Below, piece by piece: positions 903-51,682 of a stretch of 64,000 nt of DNA. Both the position numbers and the translations under genes were made by a program. Each line of letters opens with the position of its first letter. Positions within the stretch are counted from its first letter, which is position 1. The notes under the pieces are model-generated. The model made no database searches and was not told the DNA's origin. It was given only the letters and a program-made list of their open reading frames with translations. The stretch is from the sequence record ON568341.1; one strand, written 5' to 3'.

Positions 903-1129
903 GTGTTTATCGTTTACCAGTCCACTAGCACCGCCTAGAATCGATTCTAACGCATTAAACTGATTATCTGATGAATAGCCCTAGCTGGTGGCGTTAATGC
1001 CGTTAGAAAGCGATTGAGGACGTTTAAAGTATTTTGCAAAAAGTAATAAAAAGTACTTGCACGATTAAGAGATTAGAGTATAATTAATTACATCAAGACA
1101 AGACACCTTAACTAACTGAGGATATAAAG

Positions 1130-1282
1130 ATGAATACTTATGAACTGGATTGTTTCACTTTACAAGTAATGTCAGTATGCAGTAAAAAAGATTGGTCATC
1201 AAAGGAATTTAAAGCAGTTATTGCGTGTGCAAAACACGGCAAGACTATCAATGAAACGGCATCAATCATTGATAAACTTTAA
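1130..1282 (+). CDS. Hypothetical protein (50 aa, not in the ORF track)
   Basis: Promoter at 1057, SD GAGGA, MNTYELDCF...IDKL*. Confidence 0.7.
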   Translation: MNTYELDCFTLQVMSVCSKKDWSSKEFKAVIACAKHGKTINETASIIDKL

Positions 1283-1354
1283 AAAATAGTTTGACAATAG
1301 TTTTAAGTACTGCGATAATACATACATCAACTACTGAATAGGAATAAAAAAACA

Positions 1355-1582
1355 ATGGCTATCATCATTACTTACGTATCTGGTACTACTGGCACTGCTT
1401 CAACTGTTGCTGTAATTACTAATAAGAAAGGAGCGGAATTACATTTTGCAATGGATAATTGGGCCGTGAAGGAGTTCGGACCGTGGGCAAGTGTAGCATA
1501 CATTGAAACCTATCAAGTGCCATCGATTAGCTTAACTGATTTAGGTGTAGATCGAATCTTATGCCTGGATGAATTAATTTAA
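1355..1582 (+). CDS. Hypothetical protein
   Basis: Own promoter and SD. Confidence 0.75.
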   Translation: MAIIITYVSGTTGTASTVAVITNKKGAELHFAMDNWAVKEFGPWASVAYIETYQVPSISLTDLGVDRILCLDELI

Positions 1583-1668
1583 AAAAGTACTTGCAAAGTA
1601 AATCGAATAAAGTATAATACATTACATCAAGGGGAGAAAATGGTTCTCCCCACTAAGAGGAAACTAAT

Positions 1669-1812
1669 ATGAAAACTTGTCAATGTGGTAAAAAATCTAT
1701 TACTGGTTTGAAACGGGGCGTTGCACTTTGCCAGTACCATTATAATTTACAAGTATGGGGTAAAGAATGGGCCGATCAAGTGGAAGCAATTAAGAAAGCA
1801 AAAAGTAAGTAA
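1669..1812 (+). CDS. Small Cys/His-rich protein, possible Zn ribbon (47 aa)
   Basis: Promoter, hairpin leader and SD GAGG; CQC...CQYH. Confidence 0.7.
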   Translation: MKTCQCGKKSITGLKRGVALCQYHYNLQVWGKEWADQVEAIKKAKSK

Positions 1813-1893
1813 AAATATTATCACAGTACTATTGACATAGATTGATAGTACTGGCATAATAGATTTTATCAAGACAACTAAGAGGAAATTAAA

Positions 1894-2238
1894 ATGGCTA
1901 ACATCAATACTATAGCAGCACAAAATATTAACCTGTCTTCTGTTGAAGTTGTACACATTGCCGCCCGGCGTTGGTTCCAGGCGTCTTATGGTAATACTTA
2001 TTTCTCTTTAACGGTAGATGTTGAAATCAATGGCGAATTTATTGAAGTAGTAAACGTGCCGTTCCAATATGGCTACGGGGATCATTTTGACACTGTAGCA
2101 ATGGAAGAATTTAGCAAGGTTATTAATATGGAAGGTAAAGAGTTTTTACGCGGTTCTTATCTTTCCCGTTTTTGCCGTGATAATAATATTACTGTTTATA
2201 GTTCTGTTAGTGATGTTAAACGCAAAAAAGATCTTTAA
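1894..2238 (+). CDS. Hypothetical protein, paralogue of 7732-8055
   Basis: Shared GNTY.S, YGYG and DVKRKKD motifs. Confidence 0.8.
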   Translation: MANINTIAAQNINLSSVEVVHIAARRWFQASYGNTYFSLTVDVEINGEFIEVVNVPFQYGYGDHFDTVAMEEFSKVINMEGKEFLRGSYLSRFCRDNNITVYSSVSDVKRKKDL

Positions 2239-2318
2239 TTAGCTTTACTTTATGCAGATACTTTGATATAGTGTCTGCATAGGGGAAAGAAATTAAATCA
2301 ACTTAAGAGGATAGTAAA

Positions 2319-2588
2319 ATGAAAAATATCAGTACTTTAATCGATGCAGGCACACATGTTCGTCGGTCTATGGTTGCAACCAGTTCTACAAAACAAGTAG
2401 CGAGCGGTTATCTTGTATTTGTGCACGATGGAAAACTCCTGGAACGTTCAATCAATTTTGATGTTAAAAACAATTGCCGTTTTATTATCTTTAAGCGTGA
2501 GCAATATAAAATTGATTTACCAGCAAAGCCCATTAGTGGGGCGTACAACGTGCAATCATTGTTTGAGCGTCAACCATACACCTATTAA
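2319..2588 (+). CDS. Hypothetical protein
   Basis: Promoter at 2244, SD GAGGA. Confidence 0.75.
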   Translation: MKNISTLIDAGTHVRRSMVATSSTKQVASGYLVFVHDGKLLERSINFDVKNNCRFIIFKREQYKIDLPAKPISGAYNVQSLFERQPYTY

Positions 2589-2639
2589 TCAAAACAACGT
2601 TAGCGGTCGATTTAGGCCGCTTATACTGGGGATTATATA

Positions 2640-2810
2640 ATGAATACTAATCAAGTACTGAACGAGATTGAAAGCATCATTAAACCGATGAAGCGTACTG
2701 ATGCAATGTTAACACCGGAAGAATGCCGCTTATATGAGCGTTACAGCGTCGAACAAGTCCAGGCAATGGCCCGTATCCGTCCGGTTGCCAGTACTGATAA
2801 GGCGGCGTAA
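2640..2810 (+). CDS. Hypothetical protein (56 aa, not in the track)
   Basis: SD GGGGA, MNTNQVLNE...DKAA*. Confidence 0.6.
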   Translation: MNTNQVLNEIESIIKPMKRTDAMLTPEECRLYERYSVEQVQAMARIRPVASTDKAA

Positions 2811-2811
2811 T

Positions 2812-3021
2812 ATGCTTACTGTACAGGATAAGATCGACATCTTAAAGGTTAATATGTATGTGATTGATGCCGTACCTGGTAAAGTATTTGCATACGATGA
2901 CACCACTGTAAGCAATTTCTACTATAGCCAGGACGTGGGGGATCTTTCTGTACAGTCGGTTATTGAAAATGTAGTTAATGCAGCGTATGAGCATTTACTT
3001 TCAAATAGTACTTGCAATTAG
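2812..3021 (+). CDS. Hypothetical protein
   Basis: ATG immediately follows the upstream stop; start corrected from 2734. Confidence 0.65.
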   Translation: MLTVQDKIDILKVNMYVIDAVPGKVFAYDDTTVSNFYYSQDVGDLSVQSVIENVVNAAYEHLLSNSTCN

Positions 3022-3090
3022 TTTTCAGTACTGTATAATGTTTTACATGAAGGGGAGAAATAGTACTCCCCACTAATTAAGGAATATGAA

Positions 3091-3237
3091 ATGAAAGCAT
3101 CAAAAAAGAGTAATACTAAGAAAGCATGTTCACCTTTCGCTGGGGTATTCCCTTTACGTTTCGTTGATGAAGTGGTTTCCTACCCGCCGGGCCTTACTCC
3201 TGAGATGGTAGAAAGTTTGCGTAAATCTAAAAAATAA
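3091..3237 (+). CDS. Hypothetical basic protein (48 aa)
   Basis: Promoter at 3012, hairpin leader, SD AAGGA. Confidence 0.65.
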   Translation: MKASKKSNTKKACSPFAGVFPLRFVDEVVSYPPGLTPEMVESLRKSKK

Positions 3238-3318
3238 TACTTGCAATTAGTTTTTAGTACTGTATAATGTTTTACATGAAGGGGAGAAATGATTCTCCCC
3301 AAGAACAGGAGAAACAAA

Positions 3319-3471
3319 ATGAAACAATACAACGCTCGGTTTGATGTTACTATCGGCAACGGCAAAGGTCAATTCTCTTTCAGTACTCGTAAGAGTTATA
3401 CAGAAAACTTCTTGCGTAATTGTGCACTGACCGCCGCACAAATTAAACATTATTTTCAGGCTAAAAAATGA
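3319..3471 (+). CDS. Hypothetical protein
   Basis: Promoter at 3241, SD AGGAG; start corrected. Confidence 0.7.
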   Translation: MKQYNARFDVTIGNGKGQFSFSTRKSYTENFLRNCALTAAQIKHYFQAKK

Positions 3472-3557
3472 AATCATTAGCTTATTATAGTTCGGCCCTG
3501 GTCGGTGCATTGATCGCGGCATTGTTAGTAGCTTATCTATTCTTTATGGTGATTTAA

Positions 3558-3695
3558 ATGAATCCTAACGGTATAATTTACAGTACTCCTAAAACGAAAG
3601 CAGATAAAGCTAAAGCACGTAAAGCGAAAGTAAAGGAATACATCAAGCAAGGCATGACACGAAAGGCGGCGATTCTAAAAGCTAAAAATAAATGA
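3558..3695 (+). CDS. Very basic small protein (45 aa)
   Basis: MNPNGIIYSTPKTKADKAKARKAK...; SD GGTGA. Confidence 0.55.
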   Translation: MNPNGIIYSTPKTKADKAKARKAKVKEYIKQGMTRKAAILKAKNK

Positions 3696-3800
3696 AAAAA
3701 GTGGTTGACTTCGGTCAGCCATTTTGCTATTATATAATCATTGAGAGATAGCTCACTAGCCCACGGGGTGCGGGAGTGTATCTATTATATAAGCATTGAG
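3695..3800 (+). ncRNA. Terminator/promoter/small-RNA cassette, copy 1
   Basis: Hairpin containing TTGACT-17-TATTAT, then an ORF-less stem-loop with a TAGCCCACGGGGTGC core. Confidence 0.5.
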
Positions 3801-3916
3801 TACTGAAAACTATTTTAAAAGTATTTGCAGAAAGTACTTGCAAACTATCTCAATTGGCGTATAATGTTTTACATCGCAAGGGGAAACGGTTTCCCCTAGT
3901 AATAAGGAATAAAATC

Positions 3917-4258
3917 ATGACTATTGCAATTGTACAATCTAACTTTGAAAATGAAATCATCGCCCAAGCACTGCGTTTAAATGATGGTCGGGCCGAAATT
4001 AATTACGGTTTCAATTCAGGCGGTTGTGAAAAATATCAGTACTTTATAACTGCTGATGGCGGTGTCCTGGGTATTAATACAGTTATTGTAAACATTCAGA
4101 AAATTAATTTCAATGATCCAGACGATAGCCAGTTTTACATTATAGGCGTAGACGTGAACTATGAGGATGACTCACTAACTGATGATTACACTGGCGAGAA
4201 GTTAGAAAGTGCATACGGTGAAGATGATTATCAGTCAGTACCAGAAGATTTCGAATAA
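3917..4258 (+). CDS. Acidic hypothetical protein
   Basis: Promoter at 3838, SD AAGGA; start corrected. Confidence 0.75.
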   Translation: MTIAIVQSNFENEIIAQALRLNDGRAEINYGFNSGGCEKYQYFITADGGVLGINTVIVNIQKINFNDPDDSQFYIIGVDVNYEDDSLTDDYTGEKLESAYGEDDYQSVPEDFE

Positions 4259-4358
4259 TATTAAAAAATAGTTTGACAATAGATTATAGTACTGTATAAT
4301 AGTTTACATCAAGAAACGGGAAGTAACAGTACTTCCCTACTAACAGAGAGAAAACAAA

Positions 4359-4571
4359 ATGGCTGATATCCGCACTTTACTGAAAAATGCAAAACGAGTT
4401 TTATTTTCTGATCACGAACATTTAAACAAGGATATTACTGGCGTTCGGAATATCAAAGATGTAAAACGTGTTATGGGTATCTATTGCAATATGAAACGTG
4501 TTGGCACGTTCGGTAATAAATTTCTATACCAGGCGGGGGATTACAATTTTACACTGACTATCATTAACTAA
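4359..4571 (+). CDS. Hypothetical protein
   Basis: Own promoter, leader hairpin and SD. Confidence 0.75.
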   Translation: MADIRTLLKNAKRVLFSDHEHLNKDITGVRNIKDVKRVMGIYCNMKRVGTFGNKFLYQAGDYNFTLTIIN

Positions 4572-4653
4572 AAATATTATCACAGTACTATTGACATAGT
4601 TTGATAGTACTGGCATAATAGATTTTATCAACTACACTACTAAGGAATTAAAA

Positions 4654-4833
4654 ATGGCTATCATCGCAAAAACTGAAATCATCGGCCTGGATTCTATCAT
4701 CATGACGTTTGAAGATCAAAAAGGTATGTATGTAGTTTCCTATGGTGATTATGTTCGGGAGTATGAAACAGTAGACGAAGCCTTTGAAAGTTACATTCGC
4801 CAGGTGAATAAAGCATACGACGATTACCGCTAA
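4654..4833 (+). CDS. Hypothetical protein (59 aa, not in the track)
   Basis: Promoter at 4591, SD AAGGA. Confidence 0.7.
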   Translation: MAIIAKTEIIGLDSIIMTFEDQKGMYVVSYGDYVREYETVDEAFESYIRQVNKAYDDYR

Positions 4834-4946
4834 AATATATTACCAGTACTATTAAAGATATTGACAACGTTTGATAGTACTGGCATAATAAGTTTTATAA
4901 ACAGTAGTCAAATAGTAGTTAACTTAACAAAAGAGAGAGAAACAAA

Positions 4947-5090
4947 ATGATCGCACTGGATTCATTCATCGATGCAGTTCTGGCAAAAACTGGCGAGGAT
5001 CTGACCGCAGAACAATACGCAATGATCGAGCAATGCCAGCAAGACGGTAAATCGGTGAAAGATACTGTTAAGATTATCCGCAAGATGTAA
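4947..5090 (+). CDS. Hypothetical protein (47 aa, not in the track)
   Basis: Promoter at 4861, AG-rich SD, terminator downstream. Confidence 0.7.
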   Translation: MIALDSFIDAVLAKTGEDLTAEQYAMIEQCQQDGKSVKDTVKIIRKM

Positions 5091-5096
5091 GATTAT

Positions 5097-5125
5097 AAGC
5101 CCATTAGTTAACGCTGGTGGGCTTT
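5097..5125 (+). terminator. Terminator hairpin containing a Chi site
   Basis: AAGCCCA...TGGGCTT with GCTGGTGG at 5113. Confidence 0.7.
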
Positions 5126-5196
5126 AATCATTTACCCTATACAATGCCAGTACTAAACCGTTTATCTCATTAGAATGCATTACAGGACGTTTAACA

Positions 5197-5394
5197 ATGA
5201 TTAGCATGAAATCAGTACAAAAACAAATAGAAACATTATCAAAAATTAAACGTAAACAGTACTCATTAGAATATAATATCAATGGTAACTATCATCTAAT
5301 GAAAGAGAATAATTTTATCGTCATTGATGAATCATTGCAAATTATTAGTATAGTACTGAAAGCATTAATTAATGATAGAAAAAGGTTAAAATAA
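5197..5394 (+). CDS. Hypothetical protein
   Basis: SD AGGA; coupled to the next gene. Confidence 0.6.
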   Translation: MISMKSVQKQIETLSKIKRKQYSLEYNINGNYHLMKENNFIVIDESLQIISIVLKALINDRKRLK

Positions 5395-5651
5395 TGGCAG
5401 TAGGATTCGCGAAAGATGGAGCCGAGCAAGATGAGATTAACGCAGTTATTCAAGCCGCCGTTAACCACGCTAGAAAGCAAATTAACGCACAAATAGAATC
5501 ACTGATACATTGCCTCGACTGCGGCGATAAAATCCCTGAGAATCGCCGACAGGCTGTTAAGGGATGTAAGTACTGCATTAATTGCCAAGTGGATCATGAT
5601 AGTACTTTTAAAAGAGATCCGCGTAATTGTTGGCATAGATCTATGAGATAA
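5394..5651 (+). CDS. TraR/DksA-family C4 zinc-finger protein (YbiI-like)
   Basis: MAVGFAKDGAEQDEI N-terminus and CLDCGDKIPENRRQAVKGCKYCINCQ zinc finger. Confidence 0.9.
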   Translation: MAVGFAKDGAEQDEINAVIQAAVNHARKQINAQIESLIHCLDCGDKIPENRRQAVKGCKYCINCQVDHDSTFKRDPRNCWHRSMR

Positions 5652-5715
5652 AAAGTAATTGACAGTACTGAAAGATAGTGTATAATGTTTTATATCTTAA
5701 CTGAGGATAGAAATC

Positions 5716-6072
5716 ATGGGAATACAACATATCACGCGGACCACTGACAATGGCGAGATCACTGGTTATCAAGTACAGGGCAAAGTAGCACAATTGCAGT
5801 ACTGGTTTGTTAAACGTGGAATCATTGCACCGGATCTTGATTATGACCGTGTAGCGTTTATTGATTCTCTTTATGTTGATCCTGATAGTCGGGGCAATGG
5901 TGAAGGTAACGAATTAATGAATGCCTTTATCGATGCCGCCGATGATTCAGATTGTATCATCTTAGAATGCGATACGGGAGAAGATAACGCCTTTAATCTT
6001 AAAGAATGGTACGAAGGATTCGGATTCGAGGTACTGATCGATAGTGAATATCCTATCATGATTTTATCATAG
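5716..6072 (+). CDS. GNAT-family acetyltransferase
   Basis: IDSLYVDPDSRGNGEGNELM (motif A) and WYEGFGF (motif B). Confidence 0.85.
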   Translation: MGIQHITRTTDNGEITGYQVQGKVAQLQYWFVKRGIIAPDLDYDRVAFIDSLYVDPDSRGNGEGNELMNAFIDAADDSDCIILECDTGEDNAFNLKEWYEGFGFEVLIDSEYPIMILS

Positions 6073-6150
6073 TACTTGCATTTAGTTTTCAGTACTGTTA
6101 TAGTACTTGCATCAAGGGGAAACATCTTCCCCTACTAAGAGGAAATAAAA

Positions 6151-6339
6151 ATGGAAAACTTATCAAGTATTTTAGTACAAGATGATTTCGGTAATCCTGG
6201 AAGTGCTATCATTGTTCGGGGCAATAAAGCAACGTTTGTTATTGCTGGTGGACCCGTACAGCGTAGCATTAAAAATAATGCTGTTACCATTAATAATGTA
6301 CGCTATCGCTTAGATAAAGAATTAATTCATAAACTGTAA
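6151..6339 (+). CDS. Hypothetical protein
   Basis: Own promoter, hairpin and SD. Confidence 0.75.
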   Translation: MENLSSILVQDDFGNPGSAIIVRGNKATFVIAGGPVQRSIKNNAVTINNVRYRLDKELIHKL

Positions 6340-6424
6340 AAAAGTACTGGACAATAGATTATAGTACTGTATAATAGTTTACATGAAGGGGAGAAATGAT
6401 TCTCCCCACTAAGAGGAAAGAAAA

Positions 6425-6637
6425 ATGCAAGGTCAACTAATCGTTCGTAAATGGTCTGATACTAACGAAAAACCGTGGGATGTACAATACATCGCCCCAA
6501 ATGGTGAATCCAGATATCAACCAGGTGTAACGCATAGTACTGAGCAATTCGCCGCCGCTCATCGCGAACGTCTGTTACAATCAATGCAGCACGGTTCCGG
6601 TGAAAAATTCATTCAGGATCATTGGCTGAAAGATTAA
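6425..6637 (+). CDS. Hypothetical protein
   Basis: Own promoter, hairpin and SD. Confidence 0.75.
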   Translation: MQGQLIVRKWSDTNEKPWDVQYIAPNGESRYQPGVTHSTEQFAAAHRERLLQSMQHGSGEKFIQDHWLKD

Positions 6638-6723
6638 AAAGTACTTGCACAGTACTGAATAAAGTGTATAATGTTTTATATCGGAAGGGGAATAGTTCCC
6701 CTCCTAACAAAGAGGAAAGTATA

Positions 6724-6897
6724 ATGGTCCAGGTAGAATTAACAGTACTGAAAGATCTGTTTTATCGGATTGGTACTACTGGCGAATATCCGAAGGGTGA
6801 TAATGCAAAACTTTACGTATCACTCGACTTATGGCAACGCGAACAATTAGCAACGGCCTGGCGTAAAGGCAAAGCAGATAGCGAGGTGAAAGCATGA
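6724..6897 (+). CDS. Hypothetical protein
   Basis: Promoter at 6645, SD GAGGA; start corrected. Confidence 0.7.
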   Translation: MVQVELTVLKDLFYRIGTTGEYPKGDNAKLYVSLDLWQREQLATAWRKGKADSEVKA

Positions 6898-7043
6898 AAG
6901 AATTCTTATTTGAAGTAGTGTTTCAAGGTGTCGGTAATAACCAACTGATTCGAACAAGTGGTTATAATGTTAACCAGGCATGGAATAACATTAAACAAAT
7001 GTACCCGAACGCTATCACATATCGCAACCCGAAAGAAGTTTAA
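6894..7043 (+). CDS. Hypothetical protein (49 aa, not in the track)
   Basis: ATGA overlap, SD GAGGTG. Confidence 0.65.
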   Translation: MKEFLFEVVFQGVGNNQLIRTSGYNVNQAWNNIKQMYPNAITYRNPKEV

Positions 7044-7052
7044 AAATAATTG

Positions 7053-7155
7053 AAAAAGGGATTGACTCCGGTCAGTCCCTTTGCTATTATATACGCATAG
7101 AAACAAATTAGCCCACCGGGTGCATAAATGTATCTATTGTTTGCTGGTGGCTAGT
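7053..7155 (+). ncRNA. Terminator/promoter/small-RNA cassette, copy 2 (with Chi)
   Basis: AAAGGGATTGAC-TCCG-GTCAGTCCCTTT, TAGCCCACCGGGTGC core, Chi at 7143. Confidence 0.5.
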
Positions 7156-7368
7156 ACTATCAAGTACTGAAAACTATTTTTAAAAAAGTACTTGCAAAGT
7201 ATCACGATAAGCGTATAATGTTTTACATCAGGACGGGGAACGAAATAAGTAACCCCGTTAAGTAGTCCAGGAGTAAGACATACGAAAAACTCCCCTGATA
7301 AAATAGTTTGACAATAGAAAGTAAACGAGTATAATACTTACATCAACCACTGATAAGGAAACATTAAA

Positions 7369-7644
7369 ATGCGGACTTTACTTACAGCTAACGAAATCGA
7401 GCAAGTACTGACTACTAATCTGGAACAATGGAAACGTGAAGCAGATATCCAGGCGGTTCAATGCCTTAACGATAAGTTAACGCCAGATGACTTAAGCACG
7501 ATTGTTGATCCACAATTTTATGAAGATATTCACGACACGTCTTTAAGCGTCGAGGATGTACTTGATAAGCACTACATTGATACTGATTTACATGTTTACG
7601 GTCGTAAAAACTTTATCACTATTCACGACATTTACAATACTTAA
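7369..7644 (+). CDS. Hypothetical protein
   Basis: Promoter at 7308, SD AAGGA. Confidence 0.75.
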   Translation: MRTLLTANEIEQVLTTNLEQWKREADIQAVQCLNDKLTPDDLSTIVDPQFYEDIHDTSLSVEDVLDKHYIDTDLHVYGRKNFITIHDIYNT

Positions 7645-7731
7645 GTATTGACAAAGTATCTTAGTACTGTATAATAGTTTACATCAAGCGAGGGGAATGG
7701 TTCCCCTCCTAACAAAGAGAGAGAAATAAAA

Positions 7732-8055
7732 ATGGCTATGATCCTTACCCAGAAAGTAGAACTGAAAATTGTAACCTCCTTTGACATTAAAGTTAATCGG
7801 TGGACTGATAGCCACGGCAATACTTACCACTCCTGCTACGTGTCCGCATTGATTGGTGATCGCTGGGAAGACCTGGGACACGAAACCTTTACATACGGTT
7901 ACGGCACACAAGGCGAGTACACGGGTTTAGAAATCATTAAGGAAACTGTAATAGGTTTCAACCCGAAAGAGAAAGTACTACACAGAATTGAGAAAGAGAT
8001 CAACAAAGAAATTACAGTTCGCTACTACGATGTAAAACGTAAGAAAGACATGTAA
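7732..8055 (+). CDS. Hypothetical protein, paralogue of 1894-2238
   Basis: GNTYHS, YGYG and DVKRKKDM motifs. Confidence 0.8.
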   Translation: MAMILTQKVELKIVTSFDIKVNRWTDSHGNTYHSCYVSALIGDRWEDLGHETFTYGYGTQGEYTGLEIIKETVIGFNPKEKVLHRIEKEINKEITVRYYDVKRKKDM

Positions 8056-8150
8056 TAGAATCCATTTAAAGTACTATTTGACATTGCCCAGATAGTACTT
8101 TATAATAGACTCTAACTTGTAGTACTAACTCAACTAATAGGATGTATACC

Positions 8151-8546
8151 ATGATTACTAAATTCTACGCTACCCGTGAAGCTGCCCGTATTGTTGCACG
8201 CGAGGAAGGAGCAGCATTTAAAGACATGGGCAAAGATGCAACGAAAGGTCAACGCTGGGCCGTACAGTTCAAAGAAATCTCTGATATTGTGAATTCACCT
8301 GAGCCAGTACTGACAGCAGCAGAACTAAAACGAGCGGATATGCTGGCGGCAATACTTGACGCACAAGATGAGTTTATCGCTGACTCTGATATCAAAGTAC
8401 AGGTAAACCACACCGCATGGACTCACGCGGATCACCTGGCAAACCTTAAGCGTCCAAGTGAACTGATTCGCAACCAGAAAGAGATCCGACATGATCGTAA
8501 GGGTAATCGTGTAACAGTATACAGTAAACGCCGCCAGGTTATCTAA
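8151..8546 (+). CDS. Hypothetical protein
   Basis: Promoter at 8078, SD AGGA, terminator downstream. Confidence 0.75.
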   Translation: MITKFYATREAARIVAREEGAAFKDMGKDATKGQRWAVQFKEISDIVNSPEPVLTAAELKRADMLAAILDAQDEFIADSDIKVQVNHTAWTHADHLANLKRPSELIRNQKEIRHDRKGNRVTVYSKRRQVI

Positions 8547-8568
8547 TAACTTGCAGTACTAACAACAC

Positions 8569-8593
8569 GGCGGGATCAGTTCCCGCCTTTTTT
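8569..8593 (+). terminator. Rho-independent terminator
   Basis: GGCGGGA...TCCCGCC followed by T6. Confidence 0.85.
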
Positions 8594-8607
8594 ATAGGAC
8601 AAACAAA

Positions 8608-8862
8608 ATGATTAAGGTTCAACTATATAAAGATAACATCTTACGGGTACACTATAAAGCACCTCAGAGAATCATCACAAAGGCCGTACAGCTTGCTAAT
8701 GAGTTTATTAATGGTAACCTATTACCTAGGAAGTTAAGCAACGGAAAACTGCGTGTAATCGACGTGGACACTAACAACAGGATAGTAATCGAGAACACAG
8801 GAAAAATAAACCTATATGAACACCAACAATACAATAAGAAAATAAAACTAATATCACGTTGA
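8608..8862 (+). CDS. Hypothetical protein
   Basis: SD AGGA. Confidence 0.65.
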   Translation: MIKVQLYKDNILRVHYKAPQRIITKAVQLANEFINGNLLPRKLSNGKLRVIDVDTNNRIVIENTGKINLYEHQQYNKKIKLISR

Positions 8863-9194
8863 CAGTACTCAAATGTTTTAGTATTATGTACACATACCAA
8901 CACGGGAGAAACAAAATGAAATTATCTAAAATCGAAAAGAAAACTATTGATGAAGCAGTTAAGCACGGTTATACCTTTCGTAATGATTCACATTTTACCA
9001 ATTTTCAACAGGGGTATCGTACTATTAAAAAACTAATTGACAAAGGTTTATTAGTTGAAGTCAATAATGGGAACGGTATCGAGTATCAGCCAACCCAAGA
9101 CGCATTATCTTTAAAGAAATATAATATTATCTAATTGACAGTACTCAAATGTTTTAGTACTATATGTACATACCAACACGGGGGAAACAAAATG
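8859..9194 (+). repeat. Duplicated ~60-bp promoter/RBS cassette (8859-8918 and 9135-9194)
   Basis: TTGACAGTACTCAAATGTTTTAGTA...CATACCAACACGGG.GAAACAAAATGA in both copies. Confidence 0.9.
8916..9134 (+). CDS. Hypothetical protein
   Basis: Start corrected; the track start lies inside the promoter. Confidence 0.75.
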   Translation: MKLSKIEKKTIDEAVKHGYTFRNDSHFTNFQQGYRTIKKLIDKGLLVEVNNGNGIEYQPTQDALSLKKYNII

Positions 9195-9434
9195 ATTACT
9201 TTAGAAAAACGTATCAAAGAAACTACATCGCTGGTGGAACTGTTAACAGTACTCAAATGTAAAACAACACCATTTAGCACGCCGGACTTTATTAATATGG
9301 TTGATGTTAATGGTCGCTATCGTATCACGGTCGAACAAGGAGCGGCGAAAGTATTCAGTACTAAAAACACGAAGGAAGTGATCCACGCCGTTAATGTTAA
9401 AAAAGTAGTTGCCATTGATAGTAAAGTACTGTAA
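9192..9434 (+). CDS. Hypothetical protein
   Basis: Start corrected; the track start lies inside the promoter. Confidence 0.75.
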   Translation: MITLEKRIKETTSLVELLTVLKCKTTPFSTPDFINMVDVNGRYRITVEQGAAKVFSTKNTKEVIHAVNVKKVVAIDSKVL

Positions 9435-9465
9435 TATAGTTTCATTAACTCAAGGAGAACATGCA

Positions 9466-10050
9466 ATGCGTAATTATACTAAATTCATCCGTACACTGTC
9501 AGAAATGGAAACCAACAAAGAGATCCTTTCAGCTTGTCGGTTAGCTGGCCTGGAGATCATCGGTGCTGGTTCTTCCCGTATAGTTTTCGCTTTAAATGAT
9601 CGGTTAGTGATTAAGGTCGCGAATTGTGATGCGGGTGTAGAACAAAATGAAACTGAATGTAAGGTATGGAATTTTTTAGACTATGACCGCCCTCAGTTGA
9701 AACAGTACTTTGCAAAGGTGCATATGCATTTATGCGATCCTGATAATATGTTTATCGTTATGGATCGGTTGAGTACTGCAAGCAAAGGTAGTGTGAAGCA
9801 CGTAAACGCGTGCAATGAATTAAAGTACAATATTAAACGTAATGCAATCGAACGCCATCACCGCTTTGCTGATGCACTACAACACGTCGATGATACATTA
9901 TCAACACTAACGATAAGAGATATCAGAAAACAGAATATCGGCCAGGATCGTAATGGCCTTATTAAAGTACTTGATTACGGTTTAACCTGCAATATCTGGA
10001 ATCAGTACTATAAAAAGCGTGATGTGGCAGCAAGTAAGGTAACACGATAA
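9466..10050 (+). CDS. Protein kinase-like (Ser/Thr kinase fold)
   Basis: Gly loop GAGSSR, VIK lysine, helix-C QNETE, catalytic loop RDIRKQNIG, DYG metal-binding motif; SD AAGGAG. Confidence 0.8.
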   Translation: MRNYTKFIRTLSEMETNKEILSACRLAGLEIIGAGSSRIVFALNDRLVIKVANCDAGVEQNETECKVWNFLDYDRPQLKQYFAKVHMHLCDPDNMFIVMDRLSTASKGSVKHVNACNELKYNIKRNAIERHHRFADALQHVDDTLSTLTIRDIRKQNIGQDRNGLIKVLDYGLTCNIWNQYYKKRDVAASKVTR

Positions 10051-10060
10051 AAAAGATTAA

Positions 10061-10165
10061 AAAAGGGATTGACTCCGGTCAGTCCCTTTGCTATTATATA
10101 TCCATTGAGAGATAACTCACTGACCCATAGGGTGCGGAAGTGTATCTATTATATAAGTATTCAGT
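10061..10165 (+). ncRNA. Terminator/promoter/small-RNA cassette, copy 3
   Basis: Same hairpin as copies 2 and 4; TGACCCATAGGGTGC core; body resembles copy 1. Confidence 0.5.
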
Positions 10166-10274
10166 ACTGAAAACTATTTTTAAAAAAGTACTTGCAAACT
10201 ATCTCAATGAGCGTATAATGTTTTATATCGAGAGGGGGAAATGGTTCTCCCTAGTACTAAAAGGAATCAAGACG

Positions 10275-10496
10275 ATGACTACTATGACCTGCGTTCACGC
10301 TTCAAATCTTCTGAATGATGCAGCATTTAAAGCAGGTGAAGAATATCAATGCTATCGGGATGAAAATAAAAAAGTTTTTGTAGTTGATAATAATGGTTTC
10401 CATATTGAATTACAATCCGGCTTCACTGGTTTAAATGGTAAATCAGTATGGGGCGTACAGGATGATAAAGGTACATATCATTTTAAACGTAATTAA
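10275..10496 (+). CDS. Hypothetical protein
   Basis: Promoter at 10192, SD AAGGA; start corrected. Confidence 0.75.
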   Translation: MTTMTCVHASNLLNDAAFKAGEEYQCYRDENKKVFVVDNNGFHIELQSGFTGLNGKSVWGVQDDKGTYHFKRN

Positions 10497-10577
10497 GTAT
10501 TGACAAAGTATATCAGTACTGTATAATAGTTTACATCAAGGGGAGAATGGTTCTCCCCACTAAAAGGAAACAAAATT

Positions 10578-10850
10578 ATGTCCAGCTACTCCGCTACTAT
10601 GATCATTAAAGATATGAACGGTAATCCTACTTCTGCTGGTGGATCATTTGGAAACATTAATTTAGATGGTCGGTTATCCATGCAATCAGCCATCGATGCA
10701 GCGAAAGAAGTTTTTAAGAATGAATGTACTGTTAGTAAGCTGGATTATATGGGTTTCGCTATCGAGAAAACTACTCGTTTTGTGAACTACAAAAATCCAC
10801 TGATGATTGATACTAACCTGAAAGCTAACGAAGTGGGGTACTTATTATGA
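10578..10850 (+). CDS. Hypothetical protein
   Basis: Own promoter, hairpin and SD. Confidence 0.75.
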   Translation: MSSYSATMIIKDMNGNPTSAGGSFGNINLDGRLSMQSAIDAAKEVFKNECTVSKLDYMGFAIEKTTRFVNYKNPLMIDTNLKANEVGYLL

Positions 10851-11038
10851 CAGTAGAAGAAGTAAAAAAAGTACTGGCAGTACTACGATATCATAATCAT
10901 TGCAAGGTGAAGAATGATCCTGATTATCTTGATTCATCCCTGGAGGAAGACACCTTGAACGCTATAAGCCATATGCAGACATTAGCAAAGCGTATGACTG
11001 AAAAGAACATGCCGGACTATATCGGAAATAAAATTTAA
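10847..11038 (+). CDS. Hypothetical protein
   Basis: ATGA overlap. Confidence 0.7.
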   Translation: MTVEEVKKVLAVLRYHNHCKVKNDPDYLDSSLEEDTLNAISHMQTLAKRMTEKNMPDYIGNKI

Positions 11039-11124
11039 AAAGTACTTGCATTGTAGTTAGATTAACGTATAATGTTTTATATCGAGAGGGGAAATGGTTT
11101 CCCCTCAAGTCCAGGAGATACACC

Positions 11125-11388
11125 ATGAACACTATCGAAATCACTATCAATGCACACGTATACGACAACGTAGTACTGCAAACTACTATGACCGCCAATG
11201 ATACCAGTACTTTGCGGAATACTGTTATTAGTGCTGTATGTGCCGCTATCGGTGATGTATCCCTGGAAAATTCAGAACACATCAACAACGGTTTCACTAT
11301 GTGCAAACGTGATAACGCAAAACATATCATCGTGGAAGGTTACGGCGGTGTAGAATTTAATGTTTATATGAAAAAAGTACTTGCATAA
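11125..11388 (+). CDS. Hypothetical protein
   Basis: Own promoter, hairpin and SD AGGAG. Confidence 0.75.
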   Translation: MNTIEITINAHVYDNVVLQTTMTANDTSTLRNTVISAVCAAIGDVSLENSEHINNGFTMCKRDNAKHIIVEGYGGVEFNVYMKKVLA

Positions 11389-11455
11389 TAACTAAAACAA
11401 AGTATAATGTTTTGCATAGGGGGAGATATCCTCCCCCACTAAAAGGAGTAATAAA

Positions 11456-11680
11456 ATGGCTAACTTTGATGAACTGATGCGGGAAGTAGCTTACCTGGCA
11501 GAAGAGAAGAAATCATTCGATTCTATCTATAACACCGCTCACCGTGATTCAGTACTGGCATGTAACCAGGATCAAAAAGATGAACTAATCGCCACCTATC
11601 ATGAAGCATGGAAGTACTACCGACAATGGGAGAAAGAAGAAAGTGAGTCTACCATTGACGGCCTCAATAATCTAATCTAA
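11456..11680 (+). CDS. Hypothetical protein
   Basis: Own promoter, hairpin and SD. Confidence 0.75.
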   Translation: MANFDELMREVAYLAEEKKSFDSIYNTAHRDSVLACNQDQKDELIATYHEAWKYYRQWEKEESESTIDGLNNLI

Positions 11681-11756
11681 AAGTTTTATTTCAGTACTAT
11701 TGACATAGCTTGATAGTACTGATGTAATAACTTTACTAACTACAAGGGGAAACATA

Positions 11757-12014
11757 ATGGATCAATTCACACAATATCGGGTAAATCCTCAAGCTATGGC
11801 CTACGTAGAAGACCATAAAACGTTACCAGTACTGCAACCAGTTAAAGGCCGTATCTATCGTGGCCTTGCCTGGGATACGGCCCAGGATGGATATAAAACC
11901 GTCGCCGTGGGTATGTATTGCGGTGATGGTGAATGGTTTGATCCAAATAATCCGGTATCCATTGACAGTACTGAAAAAATGAAATGGGCCGACTACATCG
12001 AAGATATTTCATAA
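11757..12014 (+). CDS. Hypothetical protein
   Basis: Promoter-like cassette and SD. Confidence 0.75.
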   Translation: MDQFTQYRVNPQAMAYVEDHKTLPVLQPVKGRIYRGLAWDTAQDGYKTVAVGMYCGDGEWFDPNNPVSIDSTEKMKWADYIEDIS

Positions 12015-12104
12015 AAACTATTTGACAGTACTAACCAGTAATGTATAATGTTTTACATAGAGCGGGGGAATAGTTCTCCCGCCAATAGTTTGGAGTAAAA
12101 CATT

Positions 12105-12305
12105 ATGTCTATCGCTATCGCCCTGGTTGAAGTACTGAAAGAAGCTAAAGCCAACCTTATCGACGTAAAGATCCAGGAACTACAAAACGGCTTAATCGGC
12201 TGTACTTGTACCGCTGGTGGAGCGGCAGACTATCGAGAACACGAATCACTCGAATCACTGGTTCGGTATCTTACCATGATCGTTGATGATTGGAGAATCA
12301 TCTAA
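12105..12305 (+). CDS. Hypothetical protein
   Basis: Own promoter, hairpin and SD. Confidence 0.75.
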   Translation: MSIAIALVEVLKEAKANLIDVKIQELQNGLIGCTCTAGGAADYREHESLESLVRYLTMIVDDWRII

Positions 12306-12320
12306 CAAAAAAGAATAAAA

Positions 12321-12450
12321 AAAGGGATTGACTCCGGTCAGTCCCTTTGCTATTATATACGCATAGACAAAAACTAGCCCACAGGGTGCATAGGTGTATC
12401 CAAAATATATAGTTAATAACGGTGAGTAACTATCTGCTGGTGGAACTAAA
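12321..12450 (+). ncRNA. Terminator/promoter/small-RNA cassette, copy 4 (with Chi)
   Basis: Same hairpin; TAGCCCACAGGGTGC core; Chi at 12436. Confidence 0.5.
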
Positions 12451-30022: not shown

Positions 30023-30510
30023 TGTCATTGCAGAGTGCATTAAAAGAGGCAAAGAAGATTCATGAGTACATGATTATGGTACAGGAAGGTTTAGTGCCTG
30101 GTGTATACAAAACATCAGATACGGAATTCTTTGTTCTGGACAGGGATGATTATGATGAGTCCGAGGTACATGCTGAAACATTAGTTCTGCACACTGATAC
30201 TGGTGATAGTGACAACTGTGAATATCATATGTACAATCAATACATTAGTTATTGCCGTAATGAAGATATTACCATCTACAACACAGATATTGATGCTGAT
30301 GACACTATCATTCCATATTCAGTTCTGGAAGGTCCGTGGGATAGTGAAGAGTATTACTTTCAGAATAGTACTATCTACAGTGAAGAAGAACTGGATGTTA
30401 TTGTGATTATGTGGTACTTTAAAAGTATTGACTCCAGTAGTTTCTATTTTGATTATGAATATGTAGAGAATACAGTAGGAGAAGGTAATGTCATTACAAA
30501 GTGCTCTTGA
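30022..30510 (+). CDS. FQ-motif family, W.SEEYYFQ subfamily
   Basis: GPWDSEEYYFQNSTIYS; 39-nt DNA identity with the 28637 gene. Confidence 0.85.
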   Translation: MSLQSALKEAKKIHEYMIMVQEGLVPGVYKTSDTEFFVLDRDDYDESEVHAETLVLHTDTGDSDNCEYHMYNQYISYCRNEDITIYNTDIDADDTIIPYSVLEGPWDSEEYYFQNSTIYSEEELDVIVIMWYFKSIDSSSFYFDYEYVENTVGEGNVITKCS

Positions 30511-49550: not shown

Positions 49551-50405
49551 ATGAAACTTTATCTAATAGTTGACTATAATAAGGATTATGCTGGTAACTT
49601 CACCGAAGATTCGGATGGATATTGCACATCGACTAATGTCAATGTACGTAGCAGTAGTGCTCATGAACATGAATCTTGTAAAAATCTAAAAGATTTTATC
49701 ACATACCGAGCATTTGAAAAGAACTTCTGCCGCAGTAGATATTCTAAGTTTGAGTACCCATTAATTGATGTTCCTGATGAATTGATGTTCCAGCTAATGT
49801 TAACTGGAGTTCAAGATTATGATTATATTGCTTATAATCACATAACAAAGAAGATTTACATTGGAACATCAGTACACGATACTTCCATGTATGCATCATG
49901 CCCAGATGATCGAATGAAGCATAGAAATTCATACTATAGTGGATCAGTTGGTTCAAATAATTCATCAAATAAAAATTCATTCTTTGAGTACGTGTATGAT
50001 TACCATCACGAGAAAAAAGAACGTGAAGATTACTGTATAGAGATTGATAGTACTAATGGATATGAAGACGTAAAAGAAGCTCTTATGCCATACATTATAG
50101 AAAAATACTACAAAGATTTTCAGTACTGTAGTAATTTTCTAATCAGAAATTCTATTCAAATCGGTCGTCAATCCACTGCATACGCTATGTACTACAGTGA
50201 TTCTCCAGTTGTAGCAGGAAATGAAAGGGGTGATATCCTACCAATTCCACGTGAAGATATGACATTCATTTTTACATCTTTTATTGAGGATGATGAATTG
50301 TACGTTAAAAATAAGCATCGTTTCATGCCAAGTAAAATTGAGATTATTAGAAGCATCAGTGTTGATATATTAACCAATTTTACTGAAAAAACTGAATATA
50401 ACTGA
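49551..50405 (+). CDS. Possible GIY-YIG (Seg-like) nuclease-domain protein with an FQ-like segment
   Basis: YIAYNHITKKIYIG...HRNSYYSGS pattern, preceded by PDELMFQLML. Confidence 0.4.
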   Translation: MKLYLIVDYNKDYAGNFTEDSDGYCTSTNVNVRSSSAHEHESCKNLKDFITYRAFEKNFCRSRYSKFEYPLIDVPDELMFQLMLTGVQDYDYIAYNHITKKIYIGTSVHDTSMYASCPDDRMKHRNSYYSGSVGSNNSSNKNSFFEYVYDYHHEKKEREDYCIEIDSTNGYEDVKEALMPYIIEKYYKDFQYCSNFLIRNSIQIGRQSTAYAMYYSDSPVVAGNERGDILPIPREDMTFIFTSFIEDDELYVKNKHRFMPSKIEIIRSISVDILTNFTEKTEYN

Positions 50406-50434
50406 GACAAAATAGAAGTTAATGATATAATGTG

Positions 50435-50463
50435 AGGTGACAGTATATACTGTCACCTTTTTT
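50435..50463 (+). terminator. Perfect 24-bp palindrome plus T-run directly after an extended -10
   Basis: AGGTGACAGTATATACTGTCACCT (50435-50458); TGATATAAT at 50423-50431. Confidence 0.7.
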
Positions 50464-51120
50464 AATCCTGAAAGGTTCCTATAAGGAAATGATTAAAAGC
50501 CTAATCCACTCGAAAATGTAGAGGGTAGATGAGTAGTCCTTTCAGTACGAACAGCAGAAGAAACCCGTCAGATGTGGGCATAGTTTGAACCCCTCACGGC
50601 AATGCGGCTCAGAAGAAACCCGTCAGATGTGGGCATAGTTTGAACCCCTCACGGCAATGCGGCTGTATAAAGAACTCCAATAGGATAAAGAGAGTTCCTC
50701 GATAGACATATAAGGATCGCACCTTACCAATTATCTAAGGGAGATTTCATAAGAAATATGCGGTCGGAATTATACAATATAGTTGCGTCCAAATTTTGTG
50801 AAATCAAATACAAGTACTGGTCATATGGTATTTGTATTATGTGTCGGGATGTTTAAGACCGACGACCGTTGCTACAAGAACCGCGATAGAGAGAAACAGA
50901 GCAACCCGCTTTCGTCTCGTAAGAGAATTCGTGATATGAACTATGTGAAGGCCACCAGCGTCAAACTTTTTTGTTCTTTCCCCTGCGGGGGGATGAAATA
51001 TGCTCAAGCAAACCTCGTCAATATTAATTAAAAGACTTTATAATACTTGTAGAATTGTACATGCACCGCATGGAGAATTCTACTGATGTTGATGTAATCA
51101 ACATCACGTATATTCATTGA
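50464..51120 (+). ncRNA. Candidate large structured non-coding RNA or origin region
   Basis: No credible ORF, higher GC than its flanks, many hairpins (see findings). Confidence 0.4.
50555..50664 (+). repeat. Perfect 55-bp tandem duplication
   Basis: CAGAAGAAACCCGTCAGATGTGGGCATAGTTTGAACCCCTCACGGCAATGCGGCT at 50555 and 50610. Confidence 0.95.
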
Positions 51121-51136
51121 TGTTTCCATAGGAATA

Positions 51137-51682
51137 ATGATGGCATTTATTAAAAAAGAAAAAACTATTACTTATAAAACTTTGAATTTTGATGATTGTA
51201 TTAATCAATCACAGGACGAAAATATTTTTACTGGATATGTGGTTATTAAAGAAAAAGGATGCATTTCTTATATAAAGGAATTGCAAAATGGCATTGAAGT
51301 CACTTCAGTTAAATTACTTCCTACACAAAAACCAACAATATCAAAAGCCCAGTACGGTAATTATTTCGAGGAAAGATACAGTAATAATTTAATAAGTGTT
51401 AAAGCTCATATTGTAAAAGGAGAACTAGAAGGAGAATATAGAAAATTCAACCCACAAGGAAAATGTGTTTGGGTTAAATACTACAATTCAGGTGTTGACA
51501 TAACATCTGAAATTATTGAGTTTTTAGGATTGACATGTACACCTGAAACTCTTCATGACTACAAATTTAATACTGAAGAAGAGTTTAATCTGATGATGCG
51601 TTATGGATCACATTTTAAATTTTTATATGAATATAACGTTGACAGTAGTATTTTTGATAAAATAGTACATAATTGTCTATAA
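51137..51682 (+). CDS. MORN-variant repeat protein
   Basis: KGELEGEYRKFNPQGKCVWVKYYNSG repeat-type motif. Confidence 0.65.
   Translation: MMAFIKKEKTITYKTLNFDDCINQSQDENIFTGYVVIKEKGCISYIKELQNGIEVTSVKLLPTQKPTISKAQYGNYFEERYSNNLISVKAHIVKGELEGEYRKFNPQGKCVWVKYYNSGVDITSEIIEFLGLTCTPETLHDYKFNTEEEFNLMMRYGSHFKFLYEYNVDSSIFDKIVHNCL

Follow-up and report, generated by a model that had tools for sequence, protein, structure and literature searches.

A putative gene for a large, pseudoknotted non-coding RNA of uncatalogued class in Rak2-like jumbo phages and in prophages and islands of Enterobacterales

To our knowledge few classes of large, intricately folded bacterial and phage RNAs have been described, and RNase P, tmRNA, the group I and group II introns, OLE, GOLLD, ROOL, and raiA each opened a line of biochemistry or structural biology. 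Here we analyze a 64,000-nucleotide stretch of sequence record ON568341.1 (the window, whose coordinates are those of ON568341.1 minus 124,000). The segment studied is 100% identical to Escherichia phage UE-S1 (ON568341.1), a 358-kb Asteriusvirus of the Rak2-like jumbo-phage group. Within it an earlier reading of the letters alone (the sequence-only reading) had singled out positions 50406-51136 as a hairpin-rich island free of open reading frames (ORFs) that might encode a structured RNA of unknown class or be a replication origin. Judged from its conservation, structure, non-coding nature, signals, and distribution, window 50404-51036 appears to constitute a self-contained gene whose product would be a large non-coding RNA of an uncatalogued class.

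The closest described systems are GOLLD and ROOL, large "ornate" RNAs of phages and prophages (PMC12286853). The UE-S1 element resembles them in its size class (500-800 nt), many helices, several pseudoknots, conserved junctions, and variable peripheral stems, and also in its phage or prophage location, its stand-alone gene, and the lack of an obligatory protein neighbor. In contrast, the element matches neither covariance model, even at E≤10, its hosts are Enterobacterales whereas those of GOLLD and ROOL are Firmicutes or lake and rumen taxa, it is present as four to five paralogues per genome, and no association with tRNA clusters was seen. A second point of comparison is the related jumbo phage PA5oct, in which abundant, promoter-driven RNAs free of ORFs (ncRNA001-004, 236-619 nt) were reported, two putative long non-coding RNAs making up 2-5% of the phage reads (PMC7318152). 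These lack homology to the element (nhmmer --max at E≤100 and a motif search), and neither structure nor covariation has been reported for them. The PA5oct RNAs are a precedent rather than homologues.

Membership in an Rfam family was taken as a covariance-model score at or above that family's gathering threshold, the families including GOLLD, ROOL, OLE, raiA, RNase P, tmRNA, introns, HEARO, and 6S. At these thresholds Rfam 15 gave no match in the whole window. The sensitive mode, applied to 50000-51600 and to five loci carrying paralogues or bacterial copies, returned only noise well below threshold, and the best score (35.5 bits versus a 99-bit cut-off) lay outside the element. The Infernal/Rfam search that the sequence-only reading had proposed thus matched no family, and ARAGORN found no tRNA or tmRNA at the locus. 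A group I intron was rejected because the element has its own promoter, lies between complete ORFs, and has no Rfam Intron_gpI match; the order of helix strands in the group I scheme also differs from that of the element. Resemblances, judged by eye, to the hammerhead (CUGAUGA), to RNase P CR-V, to group I introns, and to hepatitis delta virus (HDV)-like topologies were likewise rejected because of sequence or strand order and the lack of Rfam matches. We found no description of the RNA in the literature, including the Weinberg 2017 survey (224 candidate RNAs), the Minerva preprint, and the genome paper of phage CBB (PMC5259590).

Fold, covariation, and signals of the RNA

Homologues were collected by pattern scans and nhmmer, which gave 68 unique full-length members in 28 clusters at ~85% identity from jumbo phages, metagenomes, and four bacterial genomes. 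RNAalifold, given 27 sequences of <97% identity, returned 66 pairs, 41 of which had compensatory double changes. A model built manually with helix scans has ~12 helices and four pseudoknots (PK1-PK4, Table 1) and was scored on 38 sequences of <95% identity. It contains 96 pairs with 94.3% canonical cells, and 75 of the pairs show double-sided changes. The model holds 650 compensatory cells, versus 176±13 (maximum 213) in column shuffles, and when partners were slid by one to three columns as a control only 35-43% of cells were canonical. In an independent ranking by corrected mutual information (MIp; 71 sequences, effective number ~43) the model pairs came out on top, at or near 100% canonical, and nearly all of the top canonically pairing MIp pairs lie within the modelled helices. 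The ranking recovered all four pseudoknots, through pairs 50534:50547, 50659:50707, and 50872:50901 plus five pairs between the P7 loop and 50935-40. The PK1 clamp pair 50534:50547 (MIp 1.19) is 100% canonical, and PK2 covaries among AUG/CAU, AUA/UAU, and ACA/UGU. PK3 is 99.6% canonical and compensatory in six of its seven pairs, with variants such as UCAUAU/AUAUGA, UUGUAU/AUACAA, GUCGAAU/AUUCGAC, and UUCAUGU/ACAUGAA. The covariation is thus strong; alignment to related phages was among the checks that had been proposed from the sequence. The element combines near-invariant junctions with peripheral hairpins of variable length and sequence, a pattern typical of ribozymes and ribonucleoprotein cores.

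Table 1 Features of the UE-S1 copy in window coordinates; helices and pseudoknots are those of the manual model, and paired segments are separated by a colon
Feature	Position	Strand	Description
Candidate promoter	50404-50431	+	-35-like GAGACA 50404-50409, 16-nt spacer, extended -10 TGATATAAT 50423-50431
Hairpin (11 bp) plus T-run	50434-50465	+	Between the -10 and the core; sole terminator-like site in 50200-51300
Structured RNA core	50468-50975	+	Helices P1-P12 and four pseudoknots; ~510 nt, ~453 nt without the UE-S1 duplication
5' domain	50468-50548	+	P1, P1a, P1b
P1	50468-75:50538-45	+	Encloses P1a and P1b
P1a	50476-80:50484-88	+	Inside P1
P1b	50506-11:50521-25	+	Inside P1; conserved loop GAAAAUGUA
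PK1	50533-35:50546-48	+	3-bp clamp
Central domain	50551-50726	+	P2, P3, PK2, P4, P5
P2	50551-55:50662-66	+
Extra copy of P3 sub-domain, 55 nt	50556-50610	+	Tandem with 50611-50665, 54/55 positions identical
P3	50620-23:50651-54	+
PK2	50657-59:50707-09	+
P4	50672-77:50692-97	+
P5	50711-15:50722-26	+
3' domain	50743-50940	+	P6-P12, PK3, PK4
P6	50743-46:50802-05	+
P7	50807-18:50827-38	+
PK3	50820-26:50934-40	+	P7 loop with 50934-40
P8	50842-47:50859-64	+
P9/PK4	50868-72:50901-05	+	100% canonical
P10	50882-86:50929-33	+	99.5% canonical; top MIp pair 50882:50933
P11	50889-93:50909-13	+
P12	50915-18:50923-26	+	GUAA loop
Direct repeat R1	50952-50964	+	CCACCAGCGUCAA; family consensus CCAYCAKCGUCAR
U-rich tract plus near-invariant GC hairpin	50966-50997	+	CCCC-UGC-GGGG core 50980-50990; family form CCCC-UGC-GGGGGG
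Direct repeat R2	51009-51021	+	CAAACCUCGUCAA; family consensus CAAAYCNCGUCAR
Poorly conserved spacer	51037-51136	+	Two local hairpins and annotated ribosome binding site of the downstream gene; outside the family core

Folding the region as a single sequence gave no significance (z = -1.17), so the reality of the hairpins rests on covariation. The sequence-only reading had listed eight stems by eye. Six of these stood as covariation-supported helices, TTCCT/AGGAA being P1a, GAACTC/GAGTTC P4, CAAATAC/GTATTTG P7, GTCGG/CCGAC P8, TCTC-GTAA-GAGA P12, and CCCC/GGGG the GC hairpin (itself conserved by sequence rather than by covariation), whereas the last two (51050-51106) fall outside the family core. 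The 55-bp duplication it described is present, as the tandem repeat that includes the extra P3 sub-domain. It is found in UE-S1 alone among 33 E. coli phage records and is absent from all other records too, and in two sequencing runs contigs without it join 50559 to 50615.

No reading frame is conserved. Among 38 homologues the longest ORFs (median 63 aa) vary in strand, frame, and position, and a protein-coding reading was rejected on this ground. The proposal of a structured RNA of unknown class is strongly supported: compensatory changes are many, the four pseudoknots covary, reading frames are not conserved, and Rfam offers no match. It is close to certain that these copies form a promoter-driven family of structured, non-coding RNAs. 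Multiple dispersed copies, a GC hairpin conserved at the sequence level, and the small hypothetical ORFs annotated over the element in the records of other phages would speak for a decayed protein gene or for a repeat that serves only as DNA (for instance in recombination, packaging, or protein binding). However, the covariation is strand-specific and of Watson-Crick plus G-U type over 75 pairs, including the long-range pseudoknots, so an explanation at the DNA or protein level fails; moreover, no ORF is conserved and the promoter is kept in every copy. We regard such an explanation as very improbable and, on the alignments, close to refuted.

The extended -10 noticed earlier is preceded, 16 nt upstream, by a -35-like hexamer (Table 1), and the UE-S1 promoter scored 10/12, with TG, in a promoter scan. 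A consensus of the form TG(G/A)(G/A)AC(A/G)-N17-TGnTATAAT lies upstream of the copies in 26 RNA clusters, with TATAAT invariant, and matches the "TGAAACG -35 variant" promoter class known from phages CBB and GAP32 (PMC5259590). Note that TGnTATAAT extended -10 motifs strongly favor the coding strand (13 versus 1 in the window and 77 versus 18 in the genome of phage ECO103), which suggests many host-polymerase promoters. The perfect 24-bp palindrome reported close to the promoter was found as a 24-nt inverted repeat at 50435-50458 followed by a T-run, which the scan scores as an intrinsic terminator. In the syntenic orthologues of this copy in other genera a different hairpin plus T-run occupies the same place, directly after the -10. 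The hairpin at 50434-50465 probably terminates the upstream gene, forms a 5' stem-loop of the RNA, or does both.

Distribution in phages, prophages, and islands

By blastn the element is present in 62-71 jumbo-phage records at four to five places per genome, the hosts being Escherichia, Salmonella, Klebsiella, Erwinia, Yersinia, Serratia, Pectobacterium, Cronobacter, and Xanthomonas. Phage ECO103 4-12-1, whose unannotated genome (352 kb) we assembled from eight loci, has four full-length copies at ~18, 128, 208, and 262 kb, all on one strand; the 64,000-nt window of UE-S1 contains none of the other three. The copy in the window (copy A) is flanked in the same order from the E. coli phages to RaK2, by a ~285-aa gene, the RNA, a ~180-aa gene, dam, and a cytidylyltransferase gene, although RaK2 copy A is beyond the reach of blastn and was found by nhmmer (E = 3.7e-46). 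An analysis of neighbors showed that each paralogue keeps its own gene context across genera, which indicates that the duplications are old and that every copy has been retained. The neighbors of different paralogue groups, and of phage and bacterial copies, have no protein family in common, and the idea of a conserved partner protein encoded beside the RNA was given up. The segment 50468-51036 is 98.3-98.9% identical between UE-S1 and ECO103 (98.6-98.9% in the core), versus 90-93% for the flanking genes and 79-90% for the adjoining non-coding DNA. Published Rak2-like genomes thus each contain four or five conserved genes left unannotated or mis-annotated as small hypothetical proteins.

A scan of 185,579 species genomes gave full-length homologues (E = 1e-68 to 1e-77) in four bacterial genomes, those of Serratia fonticola, Serratia sp., Silvania hatchlandensis, and an Enterobacteriaceae metagenome-assembled genome (MAG). 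The RNA is flanked there by a large serine recombinase on one side and a convergent CI-type S24 repressor on the other, or else is found at an island edge, following a recombinase and two ParB/RepB-like genes. Prophages and islands carry a single copy each, beside integrase or CI-repressor genes. Of 5,426 complete E. coli genomes, two carry the element, on an island that lies between ffs and ybaA; the RefSeq (PGAP) annotation of the E. coli copy omits it. No match was obtained among 72,556 PLSDB plasmids. The bacterial copies and the copy of Xanthomonas phage XaC1 begin just before P1b and lack P1 and P1a, and retain the promoter, core, GC hairpin, and both repeats. Mobile elements of Enterobacterales at large appear to benefit from the RNA: four to five diverged copies are kept by lytic jumbo phages, and a single one, beside integrase and immunity genes, by temperate prophages and islands.

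Some details of these islands are given here as observations. In E. coli LR-29-1 the RNA occupies a 1.4-kb unannotated gap of the ~10-kb island between ffs and ybaA; the island also carries a tyrosine integrase gene disrupted by IS3, DUF4326, DUF488, and dual-OB-domain genes, and a small recombinase gene; one of the neighbors has a weak match to the PADLOC candidate family PDC-M01B. In the Serratia genomes a compact module by rof/tilS combines a large serine recombinase gene with two ParB_N/RepB-like genes and, on the other strand, the RNA, with a duplicated rof gene alongside. The two Serratia copies have an identical RNA middle and differ at many positions in the P3a hairpin and in the whole 3' part from just before R1, which suggests that recombination may have exchanged the 3' module as a block.

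Contigs from RNA sequencing runs cover 50613-51033 at 97-99% identity and a depth of 11-16 (four runs were examined; the contigs carry no strand information). The sources were a wastewater metatranscriptome and a further RNA-seq run labelled "whole organism metagenome". The contigs include other paralogues and more distant family members, and matches to the flanking genes are ~87% identical. Since the flanks are less conserved than the core, and DNA may be present in RNA libraries, these contigs are compatible with transcription but are not proof of it.

The 3' end and candidate modes of action

Strong conservation of the element stops at ~51036. The U-tract/GC hairpin segment is 98.3% identical between UE-S1 and ECO103, and across the whole 352-kb genome the GC hairpin motif is confined to these cassettes. 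In 36 of 71 members an insert of 30-50 nt lies between R1 and the U-tract/GC hairpin and contains a canonical terminator hairpin with a U-run; the UE-S1 copy has no canonical terminator hairpin before the U-tract. Across the 71 members R1 and R2 covary letter for letter, and not as complements. Their first letters are C/C, A/A, or G/G, and at one pyrimidine position every one of the 71 has either U/U or C/C. Both repeats read CUUCA in RaK2 and CGACA in Serratia sp., a close relative of which has CGUCA twice. A strand complementary to both repeats was not found consistently inside the molecule. R1 pairs modestly, in a partner-specific manner, with an upstream GAYGN or with the sequence after the G-run (mean helix 4.87 versus 4.64±0.06 with swapped partners, and 8 bp in one GAP32 copy). 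Pairing of R2 with the invariant GAUGAG, or with the GAUGA that follows the G-run, was considered and given up, since covariation lends it no support. The pattern would fit a conformational switch around the terminator, two sites for a single trans partner, or annealing of the RNA to its template.

We favor, with some confidence, a stand-alone RNA that would act by virtue of its fold, much like GOLLD and ROOL, because the fold is compact and pseudoknotted and half of the family terminates right after it, and because the genetic contexts share only mobility and the prophages have no downstream operon. In the proposed sequence of events the host sigma-70 RNA polymerase would initiate at the extended -10 promoter, and the transcript would fold into ~12 helices locked by four pseudoknots, with highly conserved junctions and variable peripheral hairpins. 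In about half of the family the transcript would then meet an intrinsic terminator, and the conserved unit would end with the U-tract, the GC hairpin, and the repeated CGUCA motif. The RNA would be released from its locus to act in trans, possibly as a scaffold, as a protein or nucleic-acid binder, or as a ribozyme.

Several observations weigh against this proposal. The GC hairpin and R2, which follow the terminator in half of the family, are conserved as strongly as the core, and such post-terminator conservation would fit a DNA-level or read-through function that a simple released RNA does not explain. The covariation of R1 with R2 is parallel and has no intramolecular partner. The neighboring genes reveal no function, a terminator-like hairpin stands between the -10 and the core in the UE-S1 copy, and DNA carry-over together with the higher conservation of the core explains the metatranscriptome contigs equally well.

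The dispersed copies and the conserved 3' DNA could also be read as parts of an RNA-primed replication origin, in which a structured transcript would stay hybridized near the U-tract/G-run and prime DNA synthesis. Models for such origins are ColE1 RNA II, the T4 oriF and oriG transcripts, and the mitochondrial light-strand promoter (LSP)/conserved sequence block II (CSBII) primer. On this view a 350-kb genome would have its origins at the four to five dispersed copies, and R1 of the RNA would base-pair with the R2 template strand; annealing of this kind would demand just the same-letter covariation that is seen. Consistent with this, the ECO103 copies are dispersed in one orientation, the DNA beyond the terminator is conserved like the RNA, and one island in a bacterial genome is made up of the element, an integrase gene, and two ParB/RepB-like genes. 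The element resembles ColE1 RNA II in that a structured transcript of ~550 nt would start at its own sigma-70 promoter, with a G-run/C-run near the end, and in needing no element-encoded initiator protein. In phage CBB the TGAAACG promoter class has been reported upstream of DNA-synthesis genes (PMC5259590).

However, the sequence-only suggestion of an origin gained no positive support. The GC-skew analysis it had proposed shows no inflection at any copy, a weak test for T4-like replication, and none of the PLSDB plasmids carries the element. In about half of the family termination comes after the RNA and before the G-run, and the prophage copies lie between int and cI and not within a replication module. 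Neither RNA II nor the T4 origin transcripts resemble the compact, four-pseudoknot fold of the element with its conserved junctions. The element is not homologous to RNA II, and no conserved antisense promoter or unit of the RNA I type was seen in the alignments. T4 oriF and oriG combine a middle-type promoter with a DNA unwinding element at which the transcript remains hybridized, whereas the element combines a TGAAACG/-10 promoter with a GC-enriched, highly structured RNA in place of an AT-rich unwinding element and has no skew signal. An origin is therefore unlikely in our view.

The terminator hairpin and U-tract embedded between conserved blocks raise a different prospect, that the RNA is a cis-acting leader or switch which controls read-through of its own terminator and so sets downstream expression. 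It could do so by processive antitermination (as do HK022 put and EAR) or by an attenuator-type switch (1:2/3:4 versus 2:3) formed by R1 and R2 with the strands they pair with. If the two repeats compete for one strand, they should covary in parallel; R1 is able to pair with the upstream GAYGN and also with sequence after the G-run; and every phage copy has same-strand genes downstream. However, the RNAs of the Silvania and MAG prophages run into the 3' end of the convergent cI gene and thus have no downstream operon to control. The downstream genes also differ between paralogues, the gene following the window copy has its own candidate promoter, and an RNA of ~500 nt with four pseudoknots is far larger than the known antitermination RNAs. 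We consider a cis-acting switch decidedly unlikely.

As a further, more tentative possibility, the family could be a new functional class in which a pseudoknotted catalytic or assembly core is coupled to a DNA- or RNA-templated step set by the co-evolving R1 and R2, with horizontal exchange among jumbo phages, prophages, and islands; we think this possible although more doubtful than not. Such an RNA may, for example, process itself or form oligomers, or it may prime or guide a reaction where it is encoded.

A lead for the two repeats comes from the immunity system of satellite phage P4, in which seqB of the CI RNA pairs with the direct repeats seqA and seqC. The likeness lies in two direct repeats of the same sequence in one transcript and in the immunity/integrase region of a mobile element. 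In contrast to P4, no complementary "seqB" turned up inside the element, and its RNA is about seven times larger.

Whichever of these roles applies, the family is experimentally tractable. The E. coli phages 121Q, PBECO4, and UE-S1 can be grown in the best model host, and natural variants are at hand in the four to five paralogues per genome and the prophage versions. The four covariation-supported pseudoknots and the co-evolving repeats are open to genetics, probing, and cryo-electron microscopy.

Flanking genes and other features of the window

Positions 50406-51136 are without annotation and lie between the hypothetical genes UES1_368 (284 aa) and UES1_369 (181 aa), as expected of the ORF-free island first described. 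That this is the longest such gap stood within the annotated 12.7 kb inspected, whereas mechanical ORF lists for the whole window are ambiguous. The island is also GC-richer than its flanks, as had been stated (0.39-0.44 inside versus ~0.27-0.35 outside). The GIY-YIG-like character given to the downstream neighbor gained no support: at E≤0.01 no Pfam family matches the 181-aa ORF, and its PHROG, phrog_16210, has no annotated function. The flanking ORFs had no informative Pfam, PHROG, or PADLOC match.

The spacer at 51037-51136 is 89.7% identical to that of ECO103, versus 98-99% for the core. A promoter scan gave a candidate sigma-70 promoter at 51015-51044 (TCGTCA-N18-TATAAT), the -35 of which overlaps R2. 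This arrangement is not conserved in the other copies, and it could drive the downstream 181-aa gene.

The single minus-strand Chi site pointed out earlier (CCACCAGC at 50952) is indeed the only one in the window and lies inside R1. It is incidental; in most other copies the conserved block it overlaps reads CTATCATC. On the plus strand Chi (GCTGGTGG) occurs nine times in the window (984-12436 and 59587), versus ~0.2 expected from base composition. Eight of these nine sites are within the first 12.5 kb, in unrelated contexts.

Two other places in the window deserve mention. At 30070-30154 ARAGORN calls an 85-nt "tRNA-Cys" with the unusual anticodon ACA and ATGATTATGG-like direct repeats on either side, which may be a false positive or a degenerate tRNA. 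The segment 4500-5250 is ORF-poor in appearance, yet carries small annotated genes. The middle of it (~4635-4900) is shared with 234 phage records, among them rV5-like E. coli phages and some labelled Campylobacter phage, and is present four to eight times per Asteriusvirus genome; it looks like a multi-copy small-gene family.

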